Part shown: positions 1,257-57,702 of the stretch, piece after piece
How the letters are laid out: each line of letters starts with the position of its first letter
How positions within the stretch are numbered: position 1 is the first letter of the stretch
Source: Thecamonas trahens ATCC 50062
Taxonomy: Eukaryota > Protista > Apusomonadida
Assembly: GCF_000142905.1 (NCBI RefSeq)
Contig: NW_013657657.1
Span: 124,001-188,000 of the forward strand
Direction of reading: 5' to 3'
Length of the DNA stretch: 64,000 bases
Translations under genes and position numbers: made by a program
Notes under the pieces: model-generated
Database searches by the model: none
What the model saw: the letters and a program-made list of their open reading frames with translations, nothing else
Told to the model about the DNA's origin: nothing

Positions 1257-1338
<82 letters not shown>
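1257..1338. repeat. (CA)n microsatellite
   Basis: About 40 AC units immediately upstream of the ATG at 1384. Confidence 0.95.
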
Positions 1339-1339
<1 letters not shown>

Positions 1340-1383
1340 ACTCTACCCCCGCACCCCTCCCTTCCTACACATACACACGCAGT

Positions 1384-4737: not shown

Positions 4738-4973
4738 TGAGAGCTCTGCGCGCCTGCTCCTCCTCCGCTAGCCATGCCATGGCCGCCATTAGCCATCACA
4801 TCCATCCACACCCGGTATCCAACACACGCTATCTACGTCCGCCACCAGCAATCCCCATCCCCCTCTCTCCCCTTTTCCACTCCGATACGCCTCGGCCTGA
4901 CCACCGCCACCTCCCTGCCGCACAGCCCGCCGCACAGCCCGCCTCTGCTAGCATTTCTCTCGGTCGACGGTGA

Positions 4974-6322: not shown

Positions 6323-6353
6323 AGTCTGGAAGGGGGAGAGGAGAGGGGGTCGT

Positions 6354-7737: not shown

Positions 7738-8048
7738 CCGCGACAGGTGGTGCCGTCTGTCGAACGGCGACGACTGTCAACAGACCCTGCCGTCAGCCAC
7801 GGGCTGTGGGTGAGAGGTACAAGGATGGTGCAGGGGGAATGGGTAGCAATCACATTGTAGTTGGTAGGGGGGGTAGGGGAGGGGGGGGGGGGTATGACGA
7901 GGTGATGGCGGTGGTGGTGGTGGGAGGGCGGGGGAGGGGGGGAGGGGGGGGGGTCCGATCAGGACGAGTTGCCGGCTACCGAGGCAATGGAAGCCTGCAT
8001 CTCCACGCTCGGACGGCATCACTCGACTCGACACATCGGCCGGCGGTC

Positions 8049-9158
8049 ATGGCCGACGTCCGATGCGAGGTGCAAGCGAGTGGCGGAAGCGAAAGAGCGG
8101 CGCCTCCTCCTCCTCCTCCTCCTCTGCCTATGGAAGGATCTGGGGTGCCGCGGCGGCAGGTTGTGGCGGCGCGAGCCAGCGGCGAGGAGCTGTGGCGGGT
8201 GCCGGTCGGCGAGGAGGGCCAGGCGGTGGCGATCGGAGATGGGGAGCTGGCGTGGGAGCAAGTCGATGGCTGGCGAGTGTCGGAGGAGGGGTCTGGAGGG
8301 GTGGTGTTTGTTGGCTTTGGCGGCGACGGCGTGGCAGTGGTCAAGGCGAGCGGATCGGTGGCGGCCGATGCGGTGGCGGCCAAGATTGGCGAGATGGTCG
8401 GCCTTAATGCGCCCGCGACGAGACTCGTGGCGCTGCATGTCGATGCCGAGCGAGCTCAGCTGGCGGCAGCGCTCAAGCGGACTGACGCCAACACAAGTGT
8501 CGGCATGCCATCGTCAAGTGTGGTACGCCTCCTCCGTCACCCGATGCTGACCCTGGCCGAGTACGTGGTGCCGACGACATCGGGCGTCGCCGATGTGCTG
8601 CAGAGAAGCCCTGACGCCGTCGCCGACCTTGGCGCCATACTCATGTTCGACGTGCTTGTTCGCAACGCCGACCGAAGCCCACTTCTGATGGATCACGGCG
8701 GAAACGCCGGGAACATGCTCGTCGGCACTGGAGACCGGCTGGTCGCCATCGACAACAGCATGAGCTCACTCGAGCCCGGCACGCCCGAGGCGGTGCTGTA
8801 TCTGGATCGGGTGCGTGCGCTACTTGGTGAGCTTGCTGCTGTCAACGGCGGGGCCGGCCTCGACGTTGCGCCCGAGCTGCGGCGGGTCTTTGTCTGGCTC
8901 GACGCGGCGTACGGAGCCAAGTGCGACGGGGCGCTGGTGGCGGGAGTGGCGGCGGCGATGGAGGCTGCCCGAGAGACGGCGGTCGCGGTCTTGGCAGCAA
9001 AAGAAGTGCACGCGATCGTCGACGCCATGAACAGCCGCGTCGACTTCATGCTGCAGGCCATGACCTGGGGTATGGACAGCCGTGGCCGGTATGGGTTGGC
9101 GCGAGTCTCGGCACAGTTTGTGGACGAGGTGCTGGCGGTCTTTGCCGGCGCGGCCTGA
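8049..9158 (+). CDS. Actin-fragmin kinase-like (atypical PI3/4K-fold) kinase
   Basis: SEEGSGGVVFV...VVKAS; LGAILMFDVLVRNADR; GNAGNML; LVAIDNS. Confidence 0.75.
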   Translation: MADVRCEVQASGGSERAAPPPPPPPLPMEGSGVPRRQVVAARASGEELWRVPVGEEGQAVAIGDGELAWEQVDGWRVSEEGSGGVVFVGFGGDGVAVVKASGSVAADAVAAKIGEMVGLNAPATRLVALHVDAERAQLAAALKRTDANTSVGMPSSSVVRLLRHPMLTLAEYVVPTTSGVADVLQRSPDAVADLGAILMFDVLVRNADRSPLLMDHGGNAGNMLVGTGDRLVAIDNSMSSLEPGTPEAVLYLDRVRALLGELAAVNGGAGLDVAPELRRVFVWLDAAYGAKCDGALVAGVAAAMEAARETAVAVLAAKEVHAIVDAMNSRVDFMLQAMTWGMDSRGRYGLARVSAQFVDEVLAVFAGAA

Positions 9159-27018: not shown

Positions 27019-27309
27019 NNNNNNNNNNNNNNNNNNNNNNNNNNNNNNNNNNNNNNNNNNNNNNNNNNNNNNNNNNNNNNNNNNNNNNNNNNNNNNNNNN
27101 NNNNNNNNNNNNNNNNNNNNNNNNNNNNNNNNNNNNNNNNNNNNNNNNNNNNNNNNNNNNNNNNNNNNNNNNNNNNNNNNNNNNNNNNNNNNNNNNNNNN
27201 NNNNNNNNNNNNNNNNNNNNNNNNNNNNNNNNNNNNNNNNNNNNNNNNNNNNNNNNNNNNNNNNNNNNNNNNNNNNNNNNNNNNNNNNNNNNNNNNNNNN
27301 NNNNNNNNN
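27019..27309. other. Assembly gap
   Basis: N run. Confidence 1.
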
Positions 27310-35585: not shown

Positions 35586-35834
35586 ATACATCCTTCCCTT
35601 CCCCTCTCTGCACACCACCCTGCACACCCCTTTCCCTGCCCTTCCCAGCTTCTTGTATTTGGGTCGACCCCCGACCCGTTGTCGTGCCCCCTCCCCCCCC
35701 CACCCCCTCCCTCCGCTGCTGACCTAATGCCCCTGCCGAGTCGCACAGCACGCGCACCCCACTCCCCCCCCCCCACTCCCCCCCACTTCCCCCCCCTCCA
35801 CCCACCCTCCACCCACCCTCCACACGCCGCGACC

Positions 35835-38800
35835 ATGGCAGGCTTCTACTCGCCATTGGACCAGGCGTCGATGACGGTGCTCAGCTTTGACGAGCTCGGT
35901 GCCACGTTCTGGACCACGTACTTCCCCGGGGTGAAGACGCACGCGAGTGTCGAGCTCGGTGGCCTCTTTGCCGCCCTCGCCGTCTCGCTCGAGACCGAGA
36001 TGACGAGCGGGGACAAGCGGGCGCTGGGTCTCATTCTTGACCCGCATGGCTCGGGCTCGACTTCGATTAACGACTTTGCCTGTCTCCTCCGTTGGTTCGG
36101 TCCCTTTCCCAAGCTCATCGCCTCGCTCCGCGGCCTGCTCACCGATGACTACGGCGCCTCCTTCTTCTTTGGCCACCTGCCGGGGCCAGAAGCCCTTGGC
36201 CTCGTGGCTGCCAGCCAGCCTGGTACCTTTCTTGTTCGTTTCTCACAATCGGATGCCTACCATGGCGGCCTGGCGGTGACCGTCGTCGGCGCAGATCGCA
36301 ACGTCCGCCACTGGAAGGGCATCCGCGCCGTCCCCGGTGTCGGCATTGTCTCGGTCGACCCGGCCACAAACTCCCCGATTGTTTACGCCACCCTCATCGA
36401 GTTTGTCAGAAAGGGCCTTGCCGCCATGGCTGCCCCGCTGGAGCTCCACCCGGCTCCCGGCTCACCCTTTGTCGACATCTACCGCTCTCTGCCCGCTTCG
36501 CCACCGCCGCCCGTTCCTCCCAGCGTCGTTTACCACTCATCGCTCGACGAGGCCTTCAGCTCACTGCCGACACAAAGCTCGCCTGCATCGCGCTCTACTG
36601 TGGAGCCGGTCCGCAGTCCGAGCACCAGCTCGTGGGCGCCGCCAACACCACCCACTACCTCGCCATCGCCGCCGGCCCAACCCGTGCCCCCATCCACTAG
36701 CCCGACCGATGGATACACCGGGTGGGCACCGGGTAGCACAGCACCGGTCGCTTCCTCAGATCCGCCGCCGCGCCGGCGCTCTGTCTCACCGTTTGTTGCC
36801 CCGGCGAACAACTCCGAACCGTCACCGTTTGCCACCCCCCGGAGCCGCGGCGTACACCTAATGCCTCGCTCGCTCCGCCCCAGCCATCGCCGCTTGCAAC
36901 TGCTGCAGAAGCATCGGGCTATGCCAAGCTTCCGCCGCTCTCGCGCATCTCGCCGCCGCCCGAGTACGGCTCGTGGTCACCGCCGGGCGCATTCAGCTCG
37001 CCGCCGGTGGTGGCCGGCCAATCAGCCAGCGGCGACGGCTACGAGCATGACATTTCTGCCAGCTCTATGGTGCCTTTGCCTGCGCCCGGCGTCTCGGCAT
37101 ACGACGCGTACCAGCGATACACACCGTCGGCCGCGCCCGGCTCGATCCCGGTTGTCGGCGGCGTGCTCCACTTTCCAGGAGCAGGCGGGAGCCAGCCGCA
37201 GCCGATCCAGCGCCAGCCCAAGTCGCCGCACTACGACATACCACAGGACCTTGGTCCCGTCGCGCCGCCGGTCCTCTCGACCTCGCCGGTCAGACCAAGC
37301 TTTGCCGACATGCAGGCAAACCGCCAAGTCGAGCAAGCAGCGCTACCGCAGTCCAAGGAGACAACGCTCACCTCACGGCGCAAGGCTCGCAAGGACCGCT
37401 TCGCCGTCCTCCCCACCCTTGCGCTCGAGCCTGCAGGTAGCGCAGATGCATCATCGAGCTCAGCCGCACACACCGCGGTCGATGTGTACAGCTGGCGGCT
37501 GGGCGGTCACAGCAGCGGTAACTCGCCCAAGCCGAGCCGCATCCATCTGCCGGGCGCCGCCGCCCAGCACCCGTCTTGGCTGGCTGCCGGCCAGGGTCAC
37601 ACTGTTGTGCTCACCGGGACCGAGACGGGCTGGGGCTGGGGCTCAAACAGCTACGGGCAGGCATGTATCGCTGGTCCGCGCACCGACTTTGCTGAAGCGC
37701 CGCTCCCGCTAGAGACTGCAGGCGCGCTGGATGATGGCGAAGTCATTGTTGCCGCCGATGCCGGTGACGCGCACACGATGCTTCTCACCTCGCGCGGCCG
37801 GGCGCTCGCTGTCGGCCACGGCGCTGATGGTCGTCTTGGCACCGGCTCCAACAAGCTGGCCCGCAAGCCAACGCCTGTCGCTGCGCCTACCGCTGACATT
37901 GCTGCTGTTGCCGCCGCCGGTGGGTGCTCGGGCGCGCTCACTAGCTCGGGCACTGCCCTGGTGTGGGGCGACAATCGCTACGGCCAGCTTGGGCTTGGCG
38001 CCGACGTGCCGACCGCCGTGGGCGCGCCGACGACGCCACCGGGTCTCGAGAGCGTCAAGGTTGTCAAGCTCTGCTTTGGGCGGACGCACGCAATGTTTCT
38101 CAGCAGTGACGGCTCACTCTGGGTGGCTGGCACCGGCTACTCGGGCCAGCTCGGTCTCGGCACCCATCGCCGCGCAGATGTGCCGATCCAGGTCCCGGCA
38201 ACCGCCTTTGCGTCCACCGCCGGCGATCGCACCGAGCTTGTCGACATTGCTGCCGGTGACGGCCACGCGCTCGCGCTCACGGTCGACGGACGCGTCTTTG
38301 TCTGGGGCACGGGCTCGGGCCTCGACGGCGTGGCCGCACCGACATCGCCAGCCTTGTATGCGCCGGCGGCGCTCGACGGCGTCCGGGTCCTGAGCATTGC
38401 TGCCAAGTTTGGCACCTCACTTTTGGTCACTGATGCTGGCGTTTGGAACGGGCGCCAGCTGCTGTTTGCGTCGCCGTCTACGGTGGTGCTGTCGGTGGCG
38501 GTGAGCGAGGAGGTTGCTGTCGCGCTTGTGACGCAGCTGCAGATTGCGGCGAGTGCAGGGGCTTCATCAACGAGCGCGGGCCTGCTCCCTGACGCCGAGT
38601 CGTACTGGGCGACCGGCGAGCTGCCTTGCAGTACTTGCTTGGCCGAGCTTGCGCGAGGCGGCGCGGTCTTTGCTGACGCAAACCCAGCAAGCGCCGAGTA
38701 CGCACTGGTGGTGGATCTTGCGAGCGACAAGGAGCTGCTGGCACTCGGGCGTGCCGCCAAGCGCGCGCACCATGCATCAGTCTCGGCGTCGTCGGCGGTC

Positions 38801-40039
38801 GCACTGCGCAAGGTTGCCCGCGAGACCGTGCGCCGGCTAGCGCTGATGGCGTCGGACGCACTCGGCGGAGCCGAGCTCTCCGGAGCCCAGACGCCTGGCG
38901 CTGGCCTCTGCGGCCAGGTCCTGCTTGGCTCACTGAAGACCGGCGGGATGCGTGCGCGGACTCTGCTGTTCAAGGTGCTGGCCGACTTTGCAGGCGTGCC
39001 GTGTGCCCTCCTCCGCGGTGTCGGCGAGCAATGTTGGAACGTGGCGTCGCTTCCAGGCGGCGACGTCGTTGTTGACGTCCTTGTCGACGTTGCCTCGATA
39101 TACCCGGTCGGCTCGAGCGAGGCGACAGCATACTGTGTGGGTGAGATGCGCGAGTTCCACGCGGCTTTGCGGGCGTCACGGACTGGGCCGGCGCCCGCGC
39201 ATCTCGGCTTTGACGTCAGCTCCGTGACGATGCGAGTCCCGGTGGGCCGCGGCGGGTTTGGTCTCGTCGAGCGCGGGGTGTGGCGTGGCATGGCAGTAGC
39301 CATCAAGACGCTCGACGCATCGCTGGCTTCGGATCCGCATGCTGCGGCCGAGTTTGAGGACGAAGTCTGGCTGCTCTCGCAGGCGCAGCACCCCAATGTG
39401 GTGCGGTTTGTGGGCGCGTGCGCCGAGCGGCTGGTTCTGGTCACCGAGTTTTGCGGCCGCGGCTCGCTCTGGGACGTGCTCCACGAGCAGCCGATATCGC
39501 TCTCGTGGGGCTACCGCCTGTTGTTTGCCGCTGGCGCCGCTGCCGGCATCCTCTACCTCCACGACCATGCCTCGCCGCGGATCATCCACCGCGACGTCAA
39601 GTCGCTCAACCTTCTCGTCACCGACAAGTGGTGCATCAAAGTCGCCGACTTTGGCCTGGCGCGAGTCAAGACCCGCCACGCCGTCCTCACAGGGCGGCGC
39701 ATCGGCTCGTTCCAGTGGATGGCGCCCGAGCTATTTGAGGCAGGCACGCCCTACACCGAGGCTGTCGACGTCTACGGCTTTGGTGTCGTGCTGTGGGAGC
39801 TCGCCACACGGCACATCCCGTTTGAGGGCCTCGCTCCCATCGACGCTATTGAGCTCATCGTCTCGGGCGCCCGTCCGCCCCTCGACCCGCAGGCCTCGGC
39901 CTACTGGCCGCCGGGCCTTGCTGACCTCATCGCCCTCTGCTGGCACCCGGATCCGGCGTCGCGTCCGCGCATGGCTGTCGTCTTTACCGAGCTCCAGCGA
40001 ATTCGCGAGGCCATCCAGTCGCGACCCGACACACTCTGA
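35835..40039 (+). CDS. EF-hand/SH2 - Pro/Tyr-rich linker - RCC1 repeats - EDR1/CTR1 domain - Raf-like TKL kinase; frameshift at the C6 run 36835-36840
   Basis: FFGHL...PGTFLVRFS (SH2); WGSNSYGQ, WGDNRYGQLGLG, IAAGDGHAL (RCC1); RTLLFKVLAD..GVPCALLRG (EDR1); GRGGFG, VAIK, HRDVKSLN, DFG, GSFQWMAPE. Confidence 0.85.
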
Positions 40040-44430: not shown

Positions 44431-44780
44431 TGGAGGTGGGAAAGGGGGGAGAGGGATTGGCCATGTTGTGACTGACTTTGCTGTGTGGCGGCGGCATGCG
44501 GCGGGCTGGCCAATTTGGTGGGTGGTGGTTGGCACTGCCACCTCGACCAGGTTGGGAGTCCTTGAGGGGAGGGGGGGAGGGAGGGACTGCTTGGCCACCG
44601 CCAGCCACCAATTGGCAGAAAAAGGACCAACCTCTGCCACGGCTACGACCAGGCGACGGCCACCACTCGGACGACGACAACGGCGACCTGGGTAGACCTC
44701 ACCCCACACCTCACCCCACCCCCACCCCACCCCACTCCATCCCCCCCCCCCCCCCCCCCCCCCTCCCATACACACATACC

Positions 44781-45024
44781 ATGGGAGGCTCTGCGTCTGT
44801 GATTGCGCCCGAGCAGGTGGCCGAGCTGAAGGAGGCGACGGGCTTCTCGCAGAAAGAGATCAAGCGGCTGCACAAGCGGTTCAAGAAGCTCGACCGGAAC
44901 GATGACGGACGGATCAACGTGGACGAGTTCAAGCGCATTCCCGAGCTGCAGACCAACCCGCTGCTCGAACGCATTGTCGAGCTGTTTGACGTCGATGAGG
45001 ACGCATACGTCAACTTTGATGACT
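44781..45024 (+). CDS. Calcineurin B-like EF-hand protein (3' part lost in gap)
   Basis: MGGSAS myristoylation site; FSQKEIKRLHKRFKKLDRNDDG; IPELQTNPLLERIVELFDVD. Confidence 0.88.
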
Positions 45025-45480
45025 NNNNNNNNNNNNNNNNNNNNNNNNNNNNNNNNNNNNNNNNNNNNNNNNNNNNNNNNNNNNNNNNNNNNNNNNNNNN
45101 NNNNNNNNNNNNNNNNNNNNNNNNNNNNNNNNNNNNNNNNNNNNNNNNNNNNNNNNNNNNNNNNNNNNNNNNNNNNNNNNNNNNNNNNNNNNNNNNNNNN
45201 NNNNNNNNNNNNNNNNNNNNNNNNNNNNNNNNNNNNNNNNNNNNNNNNNNNNNNNNNNNNNNNNNNNNNNNNNNNNNNNNNNNNNNNNNNNNNNNNNNNN
45301 NNNNNNNNNNNNNNNNNNNNNNNNNNNNNNNNNNNNNNNNNNNNNNNNNNNNNNNNNNNNNNNNNNNNNNNNNNNNNNNNNNNNNNNNNNNNNNNNNNNN
45401 NNNNNNNNNNNNNNNNNNNNNNNNNNNNNNNNNNNNNNNNNNNNNNNNNNNNNNNNNNNNNNNNNNNNNNNNNNNNNNNN
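45025..45480. other. Assembly gap
   Basis: N run. Confidence 1.
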
Positions 45481-45528
45481 ACCACCCCCACCCAACCCCC
45501 CACCCCACCCCACCCCCCACCCCCACCC

Positions 45529-48500
45529 ATGTTGCTCTCCCTTTCAGCTACAGGTGGTGAGAGCACTGAGCTCGCCCTACCATTGTGCGCGTACTCGGGC
45601 ATGCCGCGGTCGCCAGGAGCCCGGCCCGTGACGCTCGAGCCGCCCGGGCTGCTCTGCGGCGTATGCCGGACCGATCTCATCACAGGCGGTCCGCAGTCGA
45701 CACTGGAGGAGTTGGAGCGGCCGCCGTGCTCGTGCTCGCGCTGGTCGTCGGCATACGCTGTCTTGCTCGACACTCCGCCCAAGTATGCCGCCCTTCCAAC
45801 AGGCATCCTCGAGTCGCTGCCACGGCTGACTACCCTCGCCCTGGCTGGCCTCCATCTGGCAGAGATCCCGGCGTCCATCGCCTCGTGTCCGAACCTCATC
45901 CATCTCGACGTTTCACGCAACGCCCTCACCACTCTTCCGCCCGAAATCATCACCTTGACAAAGCTCCTCGTCCTGCGCGCAGACGCCAACGATCTTAGCG
46001 AGCTGCCGGCTGGCCTCGGAACCTTGACCTCGCTGCTGGAACTCTCGCTCTCCGACAACCGCTTTGCCCGAGTCCCGCCGCAAATTCGCGCCCTCACCTC
46101 GCTGCGCAAGCTCAATCTGGCCCAGAACACCATCGAGTTGCCGCTTCTACCCGATGATGACGACGCGCTTGCCGCGCAGGTCGAGCTCGACGTCGCCGCT
46201 GCGCTCGCGGCTGCAGCTGACGAGGCAGCCGCGAGCTCGGGGCTAGATCCGCCAACCGAGGCCCTCTTTCCGCCGTCGCTCGAGGTCCTGGACCTCTCGC
46301 TCAACAACATCTCGGTCGTCCGCCTCTCAACCCCCTGGGCCGACGCCCTGCCTGCGCTCCTCAAGCTCAACCTCTCGCACAACGTCGGCATCGAGACCGT
46401 GGCGCCGCTCTTCCCGCCACCGCCGCAGCTCAGCATCCTTCTTCTCGCCGGCACGTCCATCCCATGGTTTCCCGGCCAGCTCGCGTGCGCACTGCCCAAT
46501 CTCCGTGCTCTTGACCTGGCCAAGACCCCGCTCACGATCTTGCCTCGCGCCGCGCTGGCTCTCATCTCACTCAAAGAGCTCTCGTTCCAGGACGTCATGC
46601 TCCACACCTCGGGCGAGGTCTCGCTCGACTTTAGCATGATCTTCCTGTTCCAGGCCACCGCCGCCTGCCCGCATCCGCTTCTTGTCAGCGCCCTTCTCGA
46701 GTTCTGCGTCTTTGCACGCGATCAGCTCCACTTTAATGTTGTCCGTGCCGGTGTTGGGCCTGCTCTTGTGGCCATTCTGCACACCGCCGCCGAGAATGAC
46801 GCCGCCACACCGCAGACTGTCATCGCAAGGACGCTCGAGCTGGTCCTCTCGCTCGTAGATAAGGAGACGTCCAAGGTCCAGCTACTGCACGATGGCCTCG
46901 CCGGTGCCCTCCTCGCCGTCCTCCTCGCTTCCAAGCCGTCATCACAGCTCGTCTCACTCGTTGGCATAACTGCCGCCCGAATCGCCGAAACCTCTGCGCC
47001 GCTGACCCGCCACACCCTCCTCTCGGCCAAGTACGGCGGTCCGCAGCTGCTGCGCGCACTCGAAAGCCGAGAGGCCACCGCGACCTGGGCCCACGAGCTC
47101 AACGCCTCGCTCACTACGCCGGTCATCGAGGCCGGCGTTCTCCTCGTTCAGCCAGTCAAGGCCATGCAGATATCCGGCTCCAATGGGTCGCGGCCGTACG
47201 CGCCTTACGTCTGGCTCAAGGTCTTTGAGGCTGCGGTCTCGTCAAAGTCCGATTACACCGGCGGACACAACCCGTCATGGAAGCCGCCGTCTTCGGGCTT
47301 CCGCTTCGGCATCGCCGTTACCGTCCCTCACGCCGCCACACTCCAAGTTCGCATGTACGACTACCGCCTGGCTTCGCGCGACATTCCGCTCGGCATTGGC
47401 TTTGTTGAGCTTGGCCCACTGCTCTCGGGCGAGCCGGCCGAGGTATGGATCAAGCTCGTGTCGGGTACCGCGCCGCCAGACCTGGAACAAGTCCGTGCTG
47501 CTGCCGCCGCATCCACAGCCGCGAGCTCGACGGCTGCCGTAGGCGCTGGCGGCGAGTCAGGCGAAGCTGACGAGCGCGCCACGTCGCCGGTCAACACCAC
47601 TACGGCCTCGCTCGGCGCGGCGACGCCTGTCTCGGACCGGCTCCCGCCGGCGCCGTCGATGCACTCGCTCGTCGATGGCGTGGCCCACTCGTCGCCGCCG
47701 CTGTACTCTTCTGCAGCAGCGGCGCAGGTGACGCCGTCCAAGCTCAAGCTCATTGTTCAGTTTGTGCCTCTCTCCCGCGCTGCGCTCGATGCGCTGCCGA
47801 CAAAGGATAAGCCCAAGCCGAGCGCCGGCGCCTGGAAGCTGCATCCGGTGCCGAAACGCGCCGAGATCGCGGCTCTGGTTGAAGCTGAGACCGCAGCGGC
47901 AAGCGCAGGTGCCGACGCGGCGGGCGCGGTCCCTGCGTCGCCAGCCCAACCACTTTTTGGACGCTTTCCCTCTCTCGGCGACGCGCTCGGCGGCGACGTG
48001 CGGATGTATGACAAGATCTACCTGGCGCTTGACGCCGCCAATGCGGTGTACTACGGCGACTCGGCCGATCGATTCATCCACCAGGACATGCTCCATGCGG
48101 TTCAGTTTTCAACGAGGGCGTCGTCGCAGCGGTACGCGCTCGTCGATACGGTACTTGCCGGCGAGCGGATGCTAGTGGTCGCCTTTATGGGCACGTACTC
48201 GCCGGCCGACGTTGTGGCTGATCTCGATCTTGGCGCCGCGCCACTGCTTCACGGCCGAGTCCATCGCGGCATCTTCCGCCGGGCATGCTCCATTCCACTC
48301 CTCAACCTCGCAGCGCTGCTTCGGCAGCGACTGCGGCTGCGGCACCGCCGGGTGGTGCTCACCGGGCACTCGCTCGGCGGCGGCGTCGCCGTCCTCACCT
48401 TTCTTCGACTCGCCACCGAGGCGGGGCTTACCAAGGCCGAGCTCGAGCGAGTCTCAGTCGTTACCTTTGGCCAGCCGCTGGTTGGCGACTCTGCGCTGGC

Positions 48501-51156
48501 GGATTGGATGCGTGAGACAGGGCTGGCGGCGCGGGTGACTGCAGTTGTCAACGCCGGTGACCTTGTGGCATCGATCACGCTCGCGTCTCCGCAAGTCGCC
48601 GCTGAGTATCTGCTGGCGTCAACGGCGGCGCAGCTCAAGGCCAAGGACGCATCAGAGGCGCTGGTGGATTCGATGGTCTCGTCGCTCTCGGCGCGGTTGG
48701 CACCGGCGTTTGTCGAGTTTGCGCCGGTCGGGACGTACTACGTCGTCGCGCCCGACGCGGTTGAAGCGCTCGTGGACCCGCGGGCAATCGAAGATGCGCT
48801 TGCGCTCCCCTCGCATCTCACCCGCCACCATCTCGACCAGCACGGCCTGCCGCAATACTTTGACACGCTGTTTGCGCTCCGCGGCGGTGTCGATCCGGCG
48901 GTGTCGACCTCGCGCGCGATGCGGTGGGTCACCTTTGACGCTGCCCGCGGATCGGGCTCACCGCTCTCGCCCGGGCCAGTTGGCACAGCCACACAGCGCG
49001 ACGGAGCAGGGGCACCTGCTGCGACGCCTACAGCCGCGGCAGTCGACCACAGCGCCGGCGGCTTTGAGTCGCTCATTGACGCCGAGTTTGTGGACGTCGA
49101 CATCGACGGAGCGACGAAGCGCAAGTCAGGCGGCGCGAGTGCCAGCAAGAACAGCACGGCGTCTGCCGTTGCACGCGACGCGATGGACGCGCCGTTTGCG
49201 CCCACAATTTTCAAGGTCCGGACCAAGTTTGACGTCTTTGCGCGTGTCATCGAGGTCCAACTGGTCGGCAGCCGGCTCTCGGGCCTGACCAAAGTCAAGT
49301 TCCGCGGGGCGGGGCTCGAGTACCCGCTGCTGGCGTGTAGCGAGACCCATGCGCGGTTCCGAATTGCAACGGTGCCCGAGGTGCCGTCGGCCAACTGGGC
49401 GGCGCTGACGCTGCGTGCCATCTCGCACTTTGGCGAAGCGCGGGCGCGGCTTGCGCTCGGCGCGTACGTCAACTCGATGTTCTACGCAGCAGACCTTGCG
49501 GCACGCGAACCGCGGCCGCAGCTCCACAATCGGGTGGGCGACGGCCGTGAGCTTCCAGGCATTTCGCTCGCAGTGTCTGCCGAGGGCGTGCGGCGAGCCG
49601 TTCATGCGCTTGTGGCGGCGCTCGAAGATCGCGATGTGTTTGAAGGCCTTGTGCGGTCGTACGTGTTCTCGGACATGTTCCAAGAGCAGCTGGCCGAAGC
49701 ATCGGACATTGAGATGCTCCCGTCGATTGTCAATGTGGCGGCGGTGACCCTGCCTCGGCCGAGGGTGGAGCTCGACGCGGAGCGCAATGTGGTCCGGGTC
49801 GGGTTTGGCGGCATCAACATCAAGCTCGAAGTCGGCTTTGCGCGGCTCAAGCTCTCGCAGTATCTCGAGTATGCCGAGGTTGGAGCCGAGATCGAGCTGG
49901 TTAACCTCCACGGCTCATTCTCGCTGGCGGTTGGGGCCGGCGCCGACGGCCGACAGGCGTCTGCAGCAGCGTACACGGTCGACCTCGACGACCTGGAGGT
50001 CAAGCTTGGAGCCGAGCTGTTTGGCAGCGACGGGCAGCAACTAACGTTCAAGGAGAAGTGGGGCTACTCGGCGTCACTCTTCCGGCTCTTTACCGGCTCG
50101 ATGCGCGGGCTGTTCTTGTGGATCCTCGGCGGCGCCTCGCTCAAGTCGTTCCTCAAGTCGGAGCTAGAAAACGTGCTAGTCGATTCGTCGACGGCGCGGA
50201 TGCAGTACGGTGACTCACACGCGCTGCTGGTGGATTACTCTTTGACAGCGCCGCCCGAGCTGCTGCCTGACATGGGCGAGAGCGAGGGACAGGCGGCCAA
50301 GTTTGCGACGGCGCACGCCGGACGCATTGTGCTTGAGGGTTTTGAGGCTGACGCCGCGTACGATGCCGTTGCTGCGCCGCTGCCGTTTGATGGCATGCTG
50401 GCACGGGTGCATACACACGACGTGATTGTCTGCATTTCGCCGTACATGCTCAACACGGCGCTAGTCTCGGCCTACCTTGCCGGCTGGCTCGGAGTCCGAG
50501 TCCTCGAGCACGAGGTTCCGCCTGAGCTGCGGCAGCTACTCGCAGCCGATCTCGGCGAAGGCGTGCCATTTTGGCTGCGAATTACTGCGACGGCGCCGCC
50601 TACAATAGTACTCTCGCGCGGGCTGGTCAAGCTTGTGGCGTCATCGCGGCTAGAGGTGCACGTGGACGAGTCGGGCGCCGCCGTGCGCGAGGCCGACATC
50701 CCGTTTGCGGCGGCGGTCGATGTCAGCTCGCTGAGCGTGAGTGCGTCGGGTCTGGAGGGACTCGATGCACTCAACCTTGTCGACGCCCAGGGCAAGGGCT
50801 TTGCCAAGGCGCTGGCGGCGGTTTCTGCCGAGTGGGCTAGCGGGCTTCGTGAGGTCTACGCCGCCAAGGTGGTGCCTGCGTTCTCGCGGACGCTGGCATC
50901 GTCTGGCGTCGGATCGCTCAAGGTTGTGCAGAGTCTGCCGCGGACCGAAGGCCGCGTCTATGTCGACGAGACGTGCGTGTGCGTCACGTTTGAGGTCCCG
51001 GACTTTGTACTCGACGAGGCGCAGATCACAGAGCTCAAGACGTACCTCAAGGCGCAGACTGCGGCGATTGACTCGGGCGCGGCGGTCGATACCGGCCTCA
51101 ATTGGCTCGAGTCGCACGTGCTTTCGTTCATGCGGCGGCCGCCGGTGGGAGAGTGA
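45529..51156 (+). CDS. LRR - ARM - C2 - class 3 lipase - BPI/LBP-like multidomain protein
   Basis: LRRs ~45790-46600; C2 ~47130-47460; lipase motifs VAFMGT, VHRGIF, TGHSLGG, TFGQPLVGD, NAGDLV; BPI/LBP-like PGISLAVSAEG, VDYSLTAPP, ISPYMLNTA. Confidence 0.8.
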   Translation: MLLSLSATGGESTELALPLCAYSGMPRSPGARPVTLEPPGLLCGVCRTDLITGGPQSTLEELERPPCSCSRWSSAYAVLLDTPPKYAALPTGILESLPRLTTLALAGLHLAEIPASIASCPNLIHLDVSRNALTTLPPEIITLTKLLVLRADANDLSELPAGLGTLTSLLELSLSDNRFARVPPQIRALTSLRKLNLAQNTIELPLLPDDDDALAAQVELDVAAALAAAADEAAASSGLDPPTEALFPPSLEVLDLSLNNISVVRLSTPWADALPALLKLNLSHNVGIETVAPLFPPPPQLSILLLAGTSIPWFPGQLACALPNLRALDLAKTPLTILPRAALALISLKELSFQDVMLHTSGEVSLDFSMIFLFQATAACPHPLLVSALLEFCVFARDQLHFNVVRAGVGPALVAILHTAAENDAATPQTVIARTLELVLSLVDKETSKVQLLHDGLAGALLAVLLASKPSSQLVSLVGITAARIAETSAPLTRHTLLSAKYGGPQLLRALESREATATWAHELNASLTTPVIEAGVLLVQPVKAMQISGSNGSRPYAPYVWLKVFEAAVSSKSDYTGGHNPSWKPPSSGFRFGIAVTVPHAATLQVRMYDYRLASRDIPLGIGFVELGPLLSGEPAEVWIKLVSGTAPPDLEQVRAAAAASTAASSTAAVGAGGESGEADERATSPVNTTTASLGAATPVSDRLPPAPSMHSLVDGVAHSSPPLYSSAAAAQVTPSKLKLIVQFVPLSRAALDALPTKDKPKPSAGAWKLHPVPKRAEIAALVEAETAAASAGADAAGAVPASPAQPLFGRFPSLGDALGGDVRMYDKIYLALDAANAVYYGDSADRFIHQDMLHAVQFSTRASSQRYALVDTVLAGERMLVVAFMGTYSPADVVADLDLGAAPLLHGRVHRGIFRRACSIPLLNLAALLRQRLRLRHRRVVLTGHSLGGGVAVLTFLRLATEAGLTKAELERVSVVTFGQPLVGDSALADWMRETGLAARVTAVVNAGDLVASITLASPQVAAEYLLASTAAQLKAKDASEALVDSMVSSLSARLAPAFVEFAPVGTYYVVAPDAVEALVDPRAIEDALALPSHLTRHHLDQHGLPQYFDTLFALRGGVDPAVSTSRAMRWVTFDAARGSGSPLSPGPVGTATQRDGAGAPAATPTAAAVDHSAGGFESLIDAEFVDVDIDGATKRKSGGASASKNSTASAVARDAMDAPFAPTIFKVRTKFDVFARVIEVQLVGSRLSGLTKVKFRGAGLEYPLLACSETHARFRIATVPEVPSANWAALTLRAISHFGEARARLALGAYVNSMFYAADLAAREPRPQLHNRVGDGRELPGISLAVSAEGVRRAVHALVAALEDRDVFEGLVRSYVFSDMFQEQLAEASDIEMLPSIVNVAAVTLPRPRVELDAERNVVRVGFGGINIKLEVGFARLKLSQYLEYAEVGAEIELVNLHGSFSLAVGAGADGRQASAAAYTVDLDDLEVKLGAELFGSDGQQLTFKEKWGYSASLFRLFTGSMRGLFLWILGGASLKSFLKSELENVLVDSSTARMQYGDSHALLVDYSLTAPPELLPDMGESEGQAAKFATAHAGRIVLEGFEADAAYDAVAAPLPFDGMLARVHTHDVIVCISPYMLNTALVSAYLAGWLGVRVLEHEVPPELRQLLAADLGEGVPFWLRITATAPPTIVLSRGLVKLVASSRLEVHVDESGAAVREADIPFAAAVDVSSLSVSASGLEGLDALNLVDAQGKGFAKALAAVSAEWASGLREVYAAKVVPAFSRTLASSGVGSLKVVQSLPRTEGRVYVDETCVCVTFEVPDFVLDEAQITELKTYLKAQTAAIDSGAAVDTGLNWLESHVLSFMRRPPVGE

Positions 51157-51258: not shown

Positions 51259-53314
51259 TCAGTTTTGATCCATGAGGATGCCACGCGAGGGCGAGCCGAC
51301 GGGCGAGCCGGCGGAGTTGTTGAAGGCCTTGGAGGCAGCAGCGCGGAGCGAGGACGAGAAGACCAGGGTGTCGTCATCGTCTTCAGCACCAAACTCGGGC
51401 TCTGGTGCGGGCGCAACGTCCATGTCGCAGACGGCCGACGTGGAGATGGAGGCGGCCGGGCGGATGCTTGCGGCTGACGCCGGGTAGCTGTTCTCGCCAT
51501 CCGAGTCGTCCGAGTCGTCCGAGTCGTCGTCAAAGGCGCGGATGGCAGCAAACTTGCGGCGGAGGGCGAGGGAGATGATGTCGGCCTGGGTGACGGGCGG
51601 CTCCGAGTCTGAGCGCGGACGGGTCTTCGGCGTGCCACCAGGCGAACGGTCACCGACGCGGCGGAGCGAGGCGGCCTTGGACGAGAGCTCTGACTTGATG
51701 CGGTCCATGAGTGAGGCGCCAGTGTTGGAGCGGCGGCGCTTGGACGACGGCGCAAGGTCGGCAAGCTCCGAGGCATCGGCGACCGGATCGCGCATGTGCT
51801 TGCGGGTGCGGGCGCGGGTGATGGGGCCGGATGGCATGGGCGGCGGCGGCGGGGGGGCCGAGGTCGGGGCGGGCGCGGAAGTGGAAGACGGGGCCGGCGG
51901 AAGCGGCGGCGGCGGCGGCGGGTAGGTTGTCGGGCGAGCCGACGGGCCGGCGTCGGCCGAGGCCGGGACAAGCGGCGGCGGAAGGACCGACGAGGCTGCG
52001 GCGGACGAGTCGTCGATGAGCGACGGAATGAGAGCGGCACCCTCCATGGCCGAGGCCATGGCCGAGGACAGCGACGCCAGCTGAGCCTCCAGAGCATTCA
52101 TCTGGTCCTGCGACGGTGGCGGCGGCGGCGGCGGGAGCGGCGTCGACGGGCCCGAGGTGGCCTGCGACGCGACCGGCGACGCCGGAGCCGACGCCGATGC
52201 CTCTAGCGGCGGCGGCGGCGGCGGGAGCGGAACCGGCAGAGCACGGATAAAGGTGTGGGTCTGCTGGTGATGGCGCTGGTACACGCCACCACCGGGCGCG
52301 AACGAGCCCGGCACAGCCTTGGGCGTGGGTGGAAGCGGCAGAGCCGACCGCCCAGCGCGCCTTGCCTCGTTGGCCTCGTTGACAGCAGCCTGAATGGCCT
52401 GCGCCCGCGGATGCGGGTTGCCTCCGCCAAACAGCAAGGTCTCGGAGACGAGCGGCGGAATGGCGGCAGAGAGGACGTGTCGGAAGCCGGCGTATGACGG
52501 AAACGGATCAAACGAGTGCATGGTGGCCGTGGCGTCGGTGGAAAAGGCCGACGAGAGCGCTGTCCGGAGCGAGGCCATCGACTCGGTCGACTCGATCCAG
52601 TGCGGCGGAAGCCCGAGCTTGGCCCCGAGCCTGCGGAGGAAGTTGCGCTGCCGGATTTCCTTCTGTAGTCGGGAATAGGAGAGGGAGGGAGGGCGGTGAG
52701 GGAGGCGGTGAGGGCGGTGAGGGCGGAGAGGGAGGCGGAGAAGGAGGCGCCAAAGTGAAAGTGCGAAAATTCAAAATTTAAGATTCGGCGCGCCCACGCC
52801 ACAACCTTCCCACCTGGCGAGGGCATGCGGGGGCATACGGGAGAGGGGGAGGGGGGGAGNNNNNNNNNNNNNNNNNNNNNNNNNNNNNNNNNNNNNNNNN
52901 NNNNNNNNNNNNNNNNNNNNNNNNNNNNNNNNNNNNNNNNNNNNNNNNNNNNNNNNNNNNNNNNNNNNNNNNNNNNNNNNNNNNNNNNNNNNNNNNNNNN
53001 NNNNNNNNNNNNNNNNNNNNNNNNNNNNNNNNNNNNNNNNNNNNNNNNNNNNNNNNNNNNNNNNNNNNNNNNNNNNNNNNNNNNNNNNNNNNNNNNNNNN
53101 NNNNGCCAGAAGGGGGGTTGTGTGGGGGGGGGGGGGAGGGAAGGAGGCGTACCCGGCGGACCATCTCCCTCACGCGGCGCGACATGGGCTTCTCGCCCTC
53201 GATGCGCAGGGCCTGGAGGGAGTGGACGAGGGAGACGAGCTGTGTGATTTTGCGCTCTGTGAAGATCTTTGCCTGCGCTGCATACTCTAGCAGCGACATG
53301 GTGAGCTGGTACAT
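51259..53314 (-). CDS. MTFR1/PRR11-like Pro-rich protein; exons 53314-53153 and 52662-51259
   Basis: Intron GTACGC...CAG joins in frame (the intron spans a gap); RNFLRRLGAKL, coiled coil MNALEAQLASL, poly-Pro, LRRVGDRSPGGTP, IISLALRRKFA. Confidence 0.65.
52860..53103. other. Assembly gap
   Basis: N run. Confidence 1.
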
Positions 53315-53596: not shown

Positions 53597-53800
53597 GGCA
53601 CCTGGACGGGCTCGCTCCCTCTGCTCCACACCACCACCACACAGACCCCACACGGCCCGACACGGCTTGACAAGACACAACACGACACACGACACAACAC
53701 ACTCACCTCATAACCACTCTGCTGCGGCAGTGACAGAGACTCCCCCTCCCCCCTCACCCTCACCCTCGTCCTCCTCCTCCCCCTCCCCCGCCCCCTACCC

Positions 53801-55987
53801 ATGCGGTCAGAACGGGTGGCAGAGGCCGCCTTCCTCGCCGTCACCAACCCGGCCCACTGGTCGGAGCCGACCGTCCACACCCTCGCCCCGCACTCCCCGC
53901 GGTGGACAGGGACTGCAAAGGCTGCTGCAGCCTTTTGCTTTGCCGACACCGCCGATACCGCACTCGCCTGCCTCGCGCCCCGTGCCCGCCACTCGGCCTC
54001 CCCCTCGGCTGCCCGCTCGCAGCTGCAGATGCAGCCGGCGGCTCCCACAGGCCTCGCCGCTCCCGGAGCCGATGCCTCTGCCGCAGGCACAGGCTCGACC
54101 AGTTTGTGGACCCGGCTTCATGGCTTTGTCTTTGTGCTGACCACCGGTGATGGCGATCGGCTCTACGGACACGTCCGCCGCTTTGCCGGGCCGTCGGACA
54201 CTGTGTACGCCGTGTGCATGCTCTCATATCACCCCACGGTCGCCCTCTTCCGCAAGGTCCTCAAGCTGGCCGAGCGGGTAAAGGGCCATGCTGCACCGAG
54301 CGCAGGCAACTGTCCCGCGCTCGGATCGCTCTTTGACCAGGTCCTTGCTGCCCGCATCACCTCGCCCTCGCTCAAGCTCACTGTCGGCTCGTCGAGCTAC
54401 ACTCTGCGGCTACCGCGAGCGACGCCCGGGGCCGCGCCGCGGTTTGAGCCATCAGTCGGTGCCCGGCTGGCGTTGCTTGCCGCCCTCGACGCCGACGCCA
54501 TTGCCGGCGTCCTGCTCGCTCTCGCCACCGAGCGCCGCATCCTGGTCACAGCCCAGGCGCTGGCCACGCTCTCGTCGTCAATCCTGACCCTCAACGCCTT
54601 GCTCGACCCGCTGCAGTGGCAGCACGTCTTCATCCCGGTCCTGCCACCGTCGCTCTTTGACTACGCCTGCGCACCCATGCCGTGGCTCATGGGCGTCCCC
54701 ACGTCGGAGCTCGAGACTATCGCCAAGTACCCGCTAGACGACGTCGTCGTTGTCTACCTCGACCACTCGAGCGTTGTCGACACCGCGGCTGAGCGGGCCG
54801 AGCGCGCCAGCACGTCCAGCTTTGGCGACGACCTCGCTGCTGCCGGTGGCGTCGCACTGCCGAACAAGCCGGCCGCCGCGCTGCGCAAAACATGGTCGGC
54901 GCTCCGCAAGGAGCTTGACGCCGTGGTTCCTGAATCGGCGCAGCGCGAGCTCGCCAATCGGGTCTCGAACGCGTTTATGGCCTTTTGGGTCTCACTCCTC
55001 GGCCCGTTCCGCTCGTGCCTCTTTGTCGACGAGTCGGCCGTCTCCACCGGTCGCCACGCGTCGTCGGCTGTCGTGTTTGACTCTGAGGCGCTCATCGCAC
55101 AACACGAAGAGTCCAAGTCGACCGTCGCCTTTCTTCGCGCTCTTCAGCGGACCCAGATGTTCGAGGAGTTTGGCCGCGAAATCGCAGACCGCGCGGCATC
55201 GCGCCGTCCGCCCAATGCCTTTGAAATCGCCGCCTTTTCCTACAAGCGCGTCTCGCGGTCCAAGCTCGGCAAGGTCTTCTCTGCCCTCCGCCGCGGCGGC
55301 GGCTCGTCGACTTCGGCCCCGGGCTCGCCAGCCGACTCTCCCGCCACGCCGCGGACGCCGACTGGAACCGGTGGCGGTGTCGGCGGAAGCCTTGGCAGCG
55401 GCGGGGGCTTATTCGGCGAGCTCGCCTCGCCGGTTCTCGCGCCCAACCGGGTCACCCGTCGGGTCCGCCTCGACAACCGGGTCAACTGGGACGGCGTCGA
55501 CTTTGCCGACATCCACGCCTCATTTGCTCCCCCCGATGCGCCCGACGCGCCCGACCCCGCGCTTGTCAGCCCAGCCCAGCCACACCCGGAGGCAGAGCCC
55601 CTCGCCACCTCTGCTCCGCTCATCGACTTTGCTGCAAGCACTGAGCCTGTGGCAGAGCCCAAGCCGGAACTCCCCAAGCCAGCTCGTCCGCAGGCTGCTG
55701 CCGATCCGTTTGCTATTTTCGGATCAGAGCTCGCCGCTGCACCCGCACTCGCCGCCGCATCCGCCGCAGCTCCTACCACCGTGCCGGCCGCCACCGCTGA
55801 TCCGTTTGCTATGTTTGCAGCCGGACCGTCAGTCTCGGGCAGCCTCGTGCAAGACACGCCGTCGCTGCTCTCGATGTTCGACCCGCTCCACAACGGCGAT
55901 AGTGGCAGCGCGACCAAGCCTGGCGCCGCCGCCAATGCGGACGTGCTGGCCAGCAGTGGTGCGAGCACGCCAAGCTTGCTCGACTGA
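53801..55987 (+). CDS. DENN-domain Rab GEF (DENND1/connecdenn-like)
   Basis: FVFVLTTGDGDRLYG; LATERRILV; PLQWQHVFIPVLP...CAPMPWLMGV; TQMFEEF; tail with DPF and LIDF motifs. Confidence 0.88.
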   Translation: MRSERVAEAAFLAVTNPAHWSEPTVHTLAPHSPRWTGTAKAAAAFCFADTADTALACLAPRARHSASPSAARSQLQMQPAAPTGLAAPGADASAAGTGSTSLWTRLHGFVFVLTTGDGDRLYGHVRRFAGPSDTVYAVCMLSYHPTVALFRKVLKLAERVKGHAAPSAGNCPALGSLFDQVLAARITSPSLKLTVGSSSYTLRLPRATPGAAPRFEPSVGARLALLAALDADAIAGVLLALATERRILVTAQALATLSSSILTLNALLDPLQWQHVFIPVLPPSLFDYACAPMPWLMGVPTSELETIAKYPLDDVVVVYLDHSSVVDTAAERAERASTSSFGDDLAAAGGVALPNKPAAALRKTWSALRKELDAVVPESAQRELANRVSNAFMAFWVSLLGPFRSCLFVDESAVSTGRHASSAVVFDSEALIAQHEESKSTVAFLRALQRTQMFEEFGREIADRAASRRPPNAFEIAAFSYKRVSRSKLGKVFSALRRGGGSSTSAPGSPADSPATPRTPTGTGGGVGGSLGSGGGLFGELASPVLAPNRVTRRVRLDNRVNWDGVDFADIHASFAPPDAPDAPDPALVSPAQPHPEAEPLATSAPLIDFAASTEPVAEPKPELPKPARPQAAADPFAIFGSELAAAPALAAASAAAPTTVPAATADPFAMFAAGPSVSGSLVQDTPSLLSMFDPLHNGDSGSATKPGAAANADVLASSGASTPSLLD

Positions 55988-56025: not shown

Positions 56026-57702
56026 CTAGCCCTTGATGCAGCAAATAGGGGTGAGCTTGACAGCCTTGCGGCCGATACCCTTCTGGTGGCAGGTCTCGAT
56101 GACCGCGTCGATGTCCTTATACGACGAGGTGCACTCCTCGGCAATGAGCTTGGGCGAGGCCACGCGAATGGAGACGTTCTTGGCCGCAAGCTCGTCGAGA
56201 ACAGACTCGTACTTGACCTCGCGGCGGGCCTTGGAGCGTGAGCAGCGGCGGCCGGCGCCGTGGCAGGTCGACCCAAACGTCTCGTCCATGCCCTTTTGTG
56301 TCCCAAGCAGAATGTACGAGGCCGAGCCCATCGAGCCGCCGATGAGGATGGGCTGCCCGATGTAGGTGTAGTCGACCGGGAGCATCGGGTGGCCCGGCGG
56401 GAAGGCACGGGTCGAGCCCTTGCGGTGGACAAGCAGCGTCTTGGGCGTGCCGTCGACAAGGTGCTCCTCCACCTTGGCAATGTTGTGTGAGACGTCGTAA
56501 ATGAGCGACATGTCAAGCTCCTGCGGCGACTTGCCAAACACGCTTGCAAAGGCCTGGCGGACGAGGAATGTCATCGACTGGCGGTTGACAAAGGCGTAGT
56601 TGGAGGCGCACGCCATGGCGGCGAGGTAGTCCTGCCCAGCTTGCGAGCCGATGCGAGCGCACGAGAGCTGCTTGTCGTTGACATCGATGCCGTCGTCGCG
56701 CATGGCCTGCTCCATCTCGATCAGCGCGTCAGTCGCCACCTGATGGCCGAGCCCGCGCGAGCCCGAGTGGACCATGACCACGATCTGACCCACGGCGTCA
56801 ATGCCCATCTTGGCCGCCCCATCGACGTCGTAGATTTCCTCCACCTTTTGCACCTCCAGGTAGTGGTTGCCGGCGCCGAGCGTCCCGAGCTGCGGCAGAC
56901 CGCGCTTCTTGGCCCGCCGCGAGACCTTGGACGGGTCCGCCGCAAGCAGCCGGCCGTACTCCTCGCAGTGCTCCTTGTCCTCGGGCCAGGCGTAGCCCTC
57001 GCGGAGTGACCAGTCGAGGCCCATCTCCAGAACCTCCTCCAGATCGGCCATGGTCATGGGGATGACGCCCTTGGAGCCGACACCGACCGGGATATGGTTG
57101 AACAGCGCTTGCGCTAGCTCTTCTTGGATCGGCCGCACATCCTCCTCACGCAAGTTGGTGCGGATGACCCGAACGCCGCAGTTGATGTCAAAGCCGACGC
57201 CTCCCGGCGAGACCACAGCCTCGGGATCGTCCATGTCAAACGCCGCCACACCGCCGATCGGAAAGCCGTAGCCGGAATGAACGTCTGGCATGGCAAACGA
57301 GTACCGCACGATTCCCGGCAGCTGCGCCACGTTGGCGATCTAGAACAAGAGGTGGCATTGGGGGGGGGAGGGGAGGGGGAGGTGGTGAGGAGGTGAGCTG
57401 GGGTGGGGATGGGGGATTGTGTGAGGGGGGGGGGGGGAGAGAGAGAGAGAGAGAGAGATCATGCGTACCTGCTTGAGGGCGGGCACAAAGCCGCCGACAC
57501 CCTTGGCCGAGGTGTACTGGCGTAGCTCGTCGCCCATGAGCTCACGCAGCTCGTCGTTGACATAGAACCGTCCGGGCACCCGCATGCCCGGCACAAAGCC
57601 CTTGGCAATCTCATACGTGTTGGCGTCGAGCTTCTTGATGTACCCCTCCTGCTCCTCCAGCGAGTACTCGGCAGTCTCATCCATAACCCTTGTGTCCGCC
57701 AT
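56026..57702 (-). CDS. RTCB: tRNA-splicing ligase RtcB; exons 57702-57469 and 57339-56026
   Basis: [51 protein letters not shown]; intron GTACGC...TAG. Confidence 0.97.

Follow-up and report, generated by a model that had tools for sequence, protein, structure and literature searches.

A Thecamonas trahens open reading frame combining leucine-rich repeats, a C2 domain, a class 3 lipase and a BPI/LBP/CETP-like C-terminal region

We describe a long open reading frame (ORF) in a 64,000-nucleotide (nt) stretch of the genome of Thecamonas trahens ATCC 50062 (assembly GCF_000142905.1, contig NW_013657657.1, positions 124,001 to 188,000 of the forward strand). The stretch is referred to as the window, and all nucleotide positions given without a contig name are window positions. 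The ORF at 45529-51156 (+), which corresponds to most of the public gene model AMSG_05413, encodes leucine-rich repeats (LRRs), a C2 domain, a class 3 lipase domain and a C-terminal region resembling the proteins BPI, LBP and CETP. As judged from sequence comparisons, this LRR-C2-lipase-BPI chain is a new domain architecture made from known parts, and it is rare in current databases. We consider it probable that the ORF is a real T. trahens gene for a soluble, cytosol-type lipase, in which LRRs, an ARM-like region, a C2 domain, a disordered linker, the lipase, an immunoglobulin (Ig)-like domain and a double-TULIP module follow one another. The features assigned to the ORF, with amino acid (aa) positions counted from its first codon, are listed below.

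45529-51156, + strand: whole ORF, 1,875 codons plus stop
45808-46614, + strand: leucine-rich repeats, aa ~94-362 (Pfam for aa 94-262, further repeats from the family alignment)
46621-47133, + strand: conserved helical region, aa 365-535, ARM-like by the motif F-[ND]-V-V-R-A-G-x-x-P-A-L
47140-47457, + strand: C2 domain, aa 538-643 (Pfam PF00168)
47458-48120, + strand: Ala/Ser/Pro-rich linker, variable in length among homologues (family alignment)
48121-48903, + strand: class 3 lipase, aa ~865-1125 (Pfam and structure-sequence alignment)
48370-48372, 48559-48561 and 48841-48843, + strand: Ser948 in GHSLGG, Asp1011 and the candidate His1105, respectively
49201-49470, + strand: Ig-like or E-set beta-sandwich, aa 1225-1314 (model, with a predicted local distance difference test score, pLDDT, of ~80)
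49549-51006, + strand: predicted BPI/LBP/CETP-like double-TULIP module, aa 1341-1826 (profile, model and structure matches)
51007-51153, + strand: helical tail at the C-terminus, in which the W of LNWLESHVL is conserved (alignment and model)

Results

Coding frame

The ORF contains neither an internal stop codon nor a scaffold gap, and the original prediction, made from the nucleotide sequence alone, of one uninterrupted frame of ~1,875 aa was thereby upheld. In every 600-nt block the GC content was ~0.75 at codon position 3 and lowest at position 2; such uniformity along the frame is expected for one continuous coding region. The product aligned with aa 73-1937 of AMSG_05413, with 1,862 of the 1,865 aligned residues (99%) being identical. 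Every motif named in the original prediction was found where it had been placed: GHSLGG at aa 946-951 (nt 48364), NAGD at aa 1008-1011, QHGL at aa 1104-1107 and, in the C-terminal part, PGISLAVSAEG at aa 1343, VDYSLTAPP at aa 1568, ISPYMLNTA at aa 1636 and ITATAPPTI at aa 1685.

The C-terminal BPI/LBP/CETP-like module

The proposal that the C-terminal ~480 aa are BPI/LBP/CETP-like was borne out by profile comparison and by structure prediction. We aligned the C-terminal regions of seven family members, canonical BPI not being among them (alignment A2). Comparison of A2 with two Pfam-positive BPI-like proteins of T. trahens in hhalign gave a probability of 91.3% and an expectation value (E) of 9.7e-7 over 380 columns, which covered both barrels. 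When the A2 profile was searched against all PDB sequences, human BPI was the sole match (E 0.043). The main matching stretch lies at the start of the C-terminal barrel of BPI, and in a second, weak stretch PGISLAVS pairs with NPGVVVRIS at BPI residue 2. The two stretches are thus colinear, with one at each barrel start. The nearest ESM-Atlas clusters were all LBP_BPI_CETP (PF02886/PF01273), at 0.92-0.94 with 178-190 shared features. The environmental relative P0019 (see below) scored 18.6 bits with PF02886, whose gathering score is 23.

An AlphaFold (AF2) model computed from A2 alone reached a pLDDT of 61.9 and a predicted template modelling score of 0.50. Its top Foldseek matches in the PDB were CETP (E 1.1e-17), BPI (1.2e-16) and LBP (5.9e-12), followed at lower ranks by the other TULIP proteins OrfX/P47, SPLUNC1, Mmm1, TMEM24 and JHBP. 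VIA-align superimposed model residues 117-602 on residues 1-456 of BPI (1EWF) with a Z score of 16.2 and a root-mean-square deviation (rmsd) of 6.1 over 356 residues. LBP and CETP gave Z scores of 14.7 and 13.1, the next TULIPs ~7 and SMP domains 5.7-6.8. According to the model, aa 1341-1826 is a full BPI/CETP-like double-TULIP fold, for which lipid binding in the cavity is predicted. The C-terminal sequence used singly yielded an unusable AlphaFold model (pLDDT 33), and its phmmer search against the PDB returned noise only, with ribosomal uL3 at E 0.065.

T. trahens also encodes canonical stand-alone BPI/LBP/CETP proteins, at G000:C49:263391-263969 (L012), G000:C54:51530-52108 (L013) and G000:C10:142730-143404 (L014). 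L012 (543 aa) and L014 (510 aa) have hydrophobic N-termini and carry both Pfam BPI domains above the cut-offs. The C49 and C54 copies score near-identically and may reflect either a recent duplication or a duplication in the assembly. The BPI disulfide was dropped as a membership feature; it is missing from the canonical BPI-like proteins of T. trahens as well.

The class 3 lipase and the Ig-like domain

The Lipase_3 family (PF01764) matched aa 883-1017 with 68.7 bits (cut-off 22), in agreement with the original assignment. Alignments to Rhizomucor-type lipases (E 1.7e-10 to 3.7e-10) spanned both GHSLGG and the Asp in VN-x-x-D: GHSLGG pairs with the GHSLGG of the Rhizomucor-type enzymes, and VNAGDLV with VNERDIV of solved lipases. 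In the fungal lipase, the residues aligned to Ser948 and Asp1011 are the nucleophile and the acid. GHSLG and Asp1011 (D182 of alignment A5) are invariant in the three full-length family members. Thus, two of the catalytic residues originally proposed could be placed on solved structures. The third, the His of QHGL, lies outside these alignments; the surrounding pattern QH-x-L-x-x-YF (His1105) is, however, invariant in 3/3 full-length members and is similar to the surroundings of the His in class 3 lipases. In the environmental fragment P0019, Gly occupies this position. Asp1011 and the candidate His are separated by an insertion of ~90 aa, which grows to several hundred residues in the Rhodelphis homologue. 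The lipase is apparently active; its Ser and Asp are intact, and the His proposed for catalysis is conserved.

Between the lipase and the double-TULIP module, the first 90 residues of the AlphaFold model form an Ig-like domain (aa 1225-1314), which was matched with Z scores of 7-9.6 and rmsd values of 2.2-2.8 over 71-85 residues. This domain is an addition to the domain list of the original prediction.

The N-terminal half

Pfam matches to the LRRs, all above the cut-offs, cover aa 94-262 (LRR_4 54.4 bits, LRR_8 53.4 bits and LRR_14 48.4 bits). For the LRR region of the Rhodelphis homologue, the best matches in the PDB were LRRD1, LRR proteins of Leptospira and the LRRs of plant receptor kinases, followed by SHOC2 and RSU1. 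The C2 domain (PF00168, cut-off 22 bits) scored 23.6 bits when scanned alone and 18.1 bits within the whole protein; the corresponding scores were 42.8 bits in the T. trahens paralogue and 25.7 bits in the Rhodelphis protein. The LRRs and the C2 domain of the original prediction therefore stood, as both pass Pfam cut-offs, which the helical repeats (aa 365-535) that it had called ARM-like did not: no Pfam ARM match was obtained for the AMSG_05413 protein. ARM-like motifs are visible by eye in this region, and ESM-Atlas language-model hits at 0.86-0.87 are leads only.

By eye, and without formal alignment to a solved C2 domain, SNGSRPYAPY in loop 1 replaces D-x-x-G-x-S-D-P-Y, and loop 3 reads YDYRLASRD. 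About 2/5 of the acidic Ca2+-ligand positions appear to be retained on this visual comparison, and the homologues likewise appear to have lost most of the canonical Asp residues. Because most of these ligands appear substituted, membrane docking by the C2 domain would probably be Ca2+-independent.

Relatives and distribution of the architecture

The C-terminal 616 aa were searched with phmmer, exhaustively and at E <=0.001, over 1.84 billion cluster representatives. Eight proteins were retrieved, including the query itself and three short fragments. Beyond the short fragments, three relatives were identified: the T. trahens paralogue AMSG_04138 (1,914 aa, on a different contig), EP00736_P002324 of Rhodelphis marinus (2,295 aa) and the environmental protein P0019 (1,009 aa), which begins within the lipase region on a 4-kb contig. 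The archaeal Ig-domain protein P0024 (E 7e-8) was judged a repeat- or Ig-type chance match and not a relative.

AMSG_04138 and the Rhodelphis protein carry LRR, C2, Lipase_3 and BPI regions in the same order and could be aligned with the ORF product end to end. Thecamonas is an apusomonad and Rhodelphis a relative of red algae. The shared order thus indicates conservation of the architecture across these two lineages.

The paralogue AMSG_04138 (L016, G000:C17:50000-59999) occupies two or more reading frames, with ORFs at 1330-4509 and 4571-8404 of that segment. Its lipase-BPI part is one open frame of 1,344 aa, to which the LRR-C2 part has to be joined from upstream, presumably by an intron; the gene in the window is intron-free. 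The contig that encodes P0019 (L017, ENA ERZ23487347 scaffold_17220, 4,089 bp) has an in-frame stop at codon 4, and P0019 is either a variant lacking the lipase or derives from a gene that is truncated or split by an intron.

Word-index protein searches, in which the limit of 8,000 candidates was filled, probably by LRR and low-complexity words, returned the query itself or LRR-only matches and missed the known relatives, hence they provide no evidence on distribution. When metagenome contigs of the Joint Genome Institute (JGI) were scanned for the two best-conserved peptide motifs, 469 pattern matches came up, 0 of them confirmed, which is not evidence of absence. Our literature search found no paper naming AMSG_05413 or combining Lipase_3 with LBP_BPI_CETP. 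The statement of the original prediction that no protein of this architecture has been described was therefore confirmed, the architecture being neither widespread in the search of 1.84 billion representatives nor characterised in the literature searched. [quoted passage not shown] A 2026 preprint reports a recurrent partnership of a TULIP-like domain with a PqiA membrane domain (10.64898/2026.09.11.750981), indicating that TULIPs do fuse to other lipid-handling modules, though not to a class 3 lipase.

Start of the ORF and the public model

The following features lie upstream of the ORF.

44781-45024, + strand: EF-hand gene of the N-myristoylation type (MGGSAS), cut by the gap (EF-hand pair by Pfam)
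45025-45480, no strand: scaffold gap of 456 N, masking the 3' portion of the EF-hand gene together with the intergenic sequence
45475-45528, + strand: C-rich tract immediately 5' of the ATG, with like tracts at other gene starts in the window

The public model AMSG_05413 comprises 1,937 aa, the first 76 of which come from the upstream gene (ATG at 44781, MGGSAS...). A predicted intron bridges the gap and re-enters at residue 15 of the long ORF, and UniProt names the product 'EF-hand domain-containing protein'. The public join cuts the second EF-hand loop (DVDEDAY/LALPLC, with the slash marking the join), for which the genomic continuation is DVDEDAYVNFDD. No EF-hand was found in the paralogue or in the Rhodelphis homologue, and C-rich tracts precede not only ATG 45529 but also the EF-hand gene (44781) and the gene starting at 53801. 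Because the join splits loop 2, the homologues lack an EF-hand and a C-rich tract adjoins ATG 45529, we take the EF-hand gene as separate. As a practical point, the public model thus probably carries a false EF-hand exon, an annotation artefact spliced over the scaffold gap. The EF-hand gene itself resembles calcineurin B or CHP.

This probable false join would also fit a reading of the long ORF itself as an artefact, that is, a chance-open frame in a genome of 65% GC or a mis-assembly fusing two or more separate genes. Spurious long ORFs are frequent at such a GC content, the window holds many overlapping ORFs, and the assembly is gapped, with one gap just 5' of the ORF. However, all domains lie in a single frame whose codon-position GC pattern does not change, and the ORF itself is free of gaps. 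Moreover, the domain order recurs in the paralogue, on a different contig, and in the Rhodelphis protein. The identifier of the latter, Rmarinus@m.28720, looks transcriptome-derived, in which case the whole chain would be encoded by a single transcript in that organism. We therefore regard an artefact as very unlikely.

Cellular type and a possible sensor function

In the ORF product, the Kyte-Doolittle mean stays below 1.8 for every stretch of 19 residues, and hence neither a signal anchor nor a transmembrane (TM) helix is indicated. The BPI-like module thus resides at aa 1341-1826 of a protein without a hydrophobic N-terminus, whereas the canonical BPI-like proteins of T. trahens start with hydrophobic segments. 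The product of the long ORF fits a soluble, cytosol-type protein. The absence of a clear signal peptide, noted in the original prediction, is in line with the hydrophobicity scan. Of the two orientations suggested there, facing the cytosol fits both the scan and the contrast with the canonical proteins; facing the phagosome does not, as the protein would have no direct access to the lumen.

The latter point bears on an alternative function as a sensor resembling those of innate immunity. The BPI-like module would bind lipopolysaccharide (LPS), lipid A or lipoprotein of prey in the cytosol or in a damaged phagosome, the LRRs would help recognition, and the lipase would deacylate the ligand or signal like the lipase-like domains of EDS1 and PAD4. 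Thecamonas and Rhodelphis are both phagotrophic predators, animals use BPI, LBP and LRRs in immunity, and the lipase domain indeed also matches EDS1/PAD4 (E 8e-9 to 1e-4). On the other hand, without a signal peptide or TM helix the protein would not reach the phagosome lumen. Human BPI binds LPS via its cationic N-terminal half, whereas the N-terminal barrel is acidic in 4/4 members of the family, with a net charge of -2 to -21. The catalytic residues, which EDS1-type signalling would not need, are retained, and diversification is not seen, there being just two paralogues. The LRR type is not telling, as the LRR region of the Rhodelphis homologue matches the cytosolic LRRs of LRRD1, SHOC2 and RSU1 and plant receptor-kinase LRRs alike. 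Taken together, we consider a sensor unlikely, and the idea that the protein senses or deacylates lipids of prey is speculative.

Discussion

Proposed mode of action

If the ORF encodes a soluble lipase of the cytosol type, as we favour, the modules could cooperate as follows. The C2 domain would dock the protein on a membrane, and the double-TULIP module would extract the acyl chains of lipids from the bilayer. It would then present the lipid to the neighbouring lipase, which would cut a glycerolipid ester bond, or it would remove the products. The LRR/ARM part might bind a protein partner that controls the place or the time of the reaction.

Several points weigh against this picture. The hand-over of substrate from the TULIP module to the lipase is something that we purely infer. 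In the Pfam scan, PF02886 (LBP_BPI_CETP_C) reached only 13.9 bits (E 0.037), below its gathering score of 23, and PF01273, the N-terminal BPI domain, gave no match up to E 10. The confidence of the AF2 model is middling: the C-terminal barrel falls partly below a pLDDT of 50, and the TM-scores to BPI and CETP are 0.44-0.49. His1105 is a candidate catalytic residue, proposed from conservation and motif context without structural alignment, and the ARM assignment of aa 365-535 is weak. Furthermore, the true N-terminus of the protein is uncertain, because the start codon lies 48 nt downstream of the 456-N gap.

Lipid transfer at membrane contact sites could alternatively be the main task, with the protein acting as a tether like the E-Syts and tricalbins and the lipase only remodelling lipids or regulating transfer. 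The combination of C2 and TULIP follows the logic of the E-Syts, SMP domains are among the structural matches (Z 5.7-6.8), and the protein is long and contains disordered linkers. However, an anchor for the second membrane is missing, and the module is of the BPI/CETP type (Z 13-16) and not of the SMP type (at most 7). Conservation of the lipase residues in 3/3 full-length members furthermore argues that hydrolysis matters. A contact-site tether is thus, in our view, an improbable main function.

Returning to the soluble lipase, a more far-reaching version is conceivable, though we hold it to be rather doubtful. The protein would be the first BPI/CETP-type double-TULIP to work in the cytosol and to be covalently coupled to a lipid hydrolase, with the tube feeding membrane lipid, for example of the phagosomal or plasma membrane, to the lipase site under control by an LRR/ARM partner. 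If true, a soluble lipase would have a new route to bilayer lipids, one that has so far turned up in no more than a few protists, all phagotrophic.

The known settings of the BPI fold would be widened by a cytosol-type protein that ends in a complete double-TULIP module, placed right behind a lipase that is apparently active and combined with a C2 domain. If the modules cooperate, the protein would be a natural case of one chain in which a lipid-transfer domain works for a lipid hydrolase. The scattered occurrence in an apusomonad, in Rhodelphis and in unidentified environmental sequences bears on the early eukaryotic history of the TULIPs.

Other features of the window

The genome searched is an assembly of 28.7 Mb in 131 contigs and was treated as intron-containing. 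Neighbouring ORFs in the window are eukaryotic in type, their products being a cullin, a kinesin, a DENN-domain protein and an RCC1-kinase. From the assembly, the match to AMSG_05413 and these neighbours, a bacterial origin of the window was rejected; T. trahens is a eukaryotic flagellate that feeds on bacteria. The RCC1-kinase, a single ORF of 1,010 aa at 37007-40036 (+), joins RCC1 repeats (164 bits for the RCC1-like domain) to an EDR1/CTR1/ARMC3 peptidase-like domain and has a protein kinase at its C-terminus; its product is a Raf/CTR1-like kinase with an N-terminal RCC1 propeller. Two more scaffold gaps lie at 27019-27309 and 52860-53104.

Many genes in the window have at their 5' ends, on the coding strand, a C-rich tract 40-100 nt long that consists of CCCCA-type repeats and poly-C. 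Examples on the plus strand are 44692-44785, 45475-45543, 53737-53809 and 35665-35733, and G-rich counterparts belong to minus-strand genes at 52671-52749 and 57343-57458. From their positions, the tracts look like a common promoter or 5'-untranslated-region feature of the T. trahens genome.

Comparison with known systems

The C-terminal module shares with BPI, LBP and CETP (PF01273 and PF02886; 1EWF, 4M4D and 2OBD) a predicted full-length double-TULIP, which is colinear with BPI residues 1-456, and it shows profile homology to the canonical members in the T. trahens genome. It differs from them in being the C-terminal part of a 1,875-aa chain that has domains of the cytosolic type and lacks a signal peptide. 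Moreover, its sequence remains under both Pfam cut-offs, and its N-terminal barrel is acidic. BPI-related TULIPs that do occur intracellularly, of the S. pombe SPAC32A11.02c type, lie near the C-terminus of proteins of 500-1,200 aa (PMC5507252). That type has one TULIP, whereas AMSG_05413 is predicted to have two.

The lipase resembles that of Rhizomucor miehei (3TGL/4TGL) and other Lipase_3 proteins in its 68.7-bit score, in the aligned GHSLGG elbow and Asp, and in the context of the candidate His, His-x(3,4)-YF, that follows. In contrast to the fungal class 3 lipases, which are small secreted enzymes, it has an insertion of ~90 aa between Asp and the candidate His and belongs to a multidomain protein of the cytosolic type. 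In cPLA2 alpha, a Ca2+-binding C2 domain brings a soluble lipid hydrolase to the membrane, and a lipid-carrier module is missing. The logic of C2 domain plus lipid hydrolase is the same here. However, the catalytic folds belong to unrelated families, most of the C2 Ca2+ ligands of the T. trahens protein appear by eye to be replaced, and a lipid-carrier module is present.

The E-Syts and tricalbins likewise are cytosolic proteins that pair a TULIP lipid carrier with C2 domains. E-Syts, however, possess a single, dimerising SMP TULIP and a membrane anchor and no hydrolase, whereas the T. trahens protein combines a BPI-type double barrel (Z 16.2, compared with 5.7-6.8 for SMP) with a fused lipase. 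Finally, in PfTUPA a TULIP-like domain is fused to a PqiA membrane domain and faces the lumen of the digestive vacuole (bioRxiv 10.64898/2026.09.11.750981). Both proteins thus join a TULIP to a second lipid-handling module, with PqiA as the partner in PfTUPA and a class 3 lipase as the partner in T. trahens.

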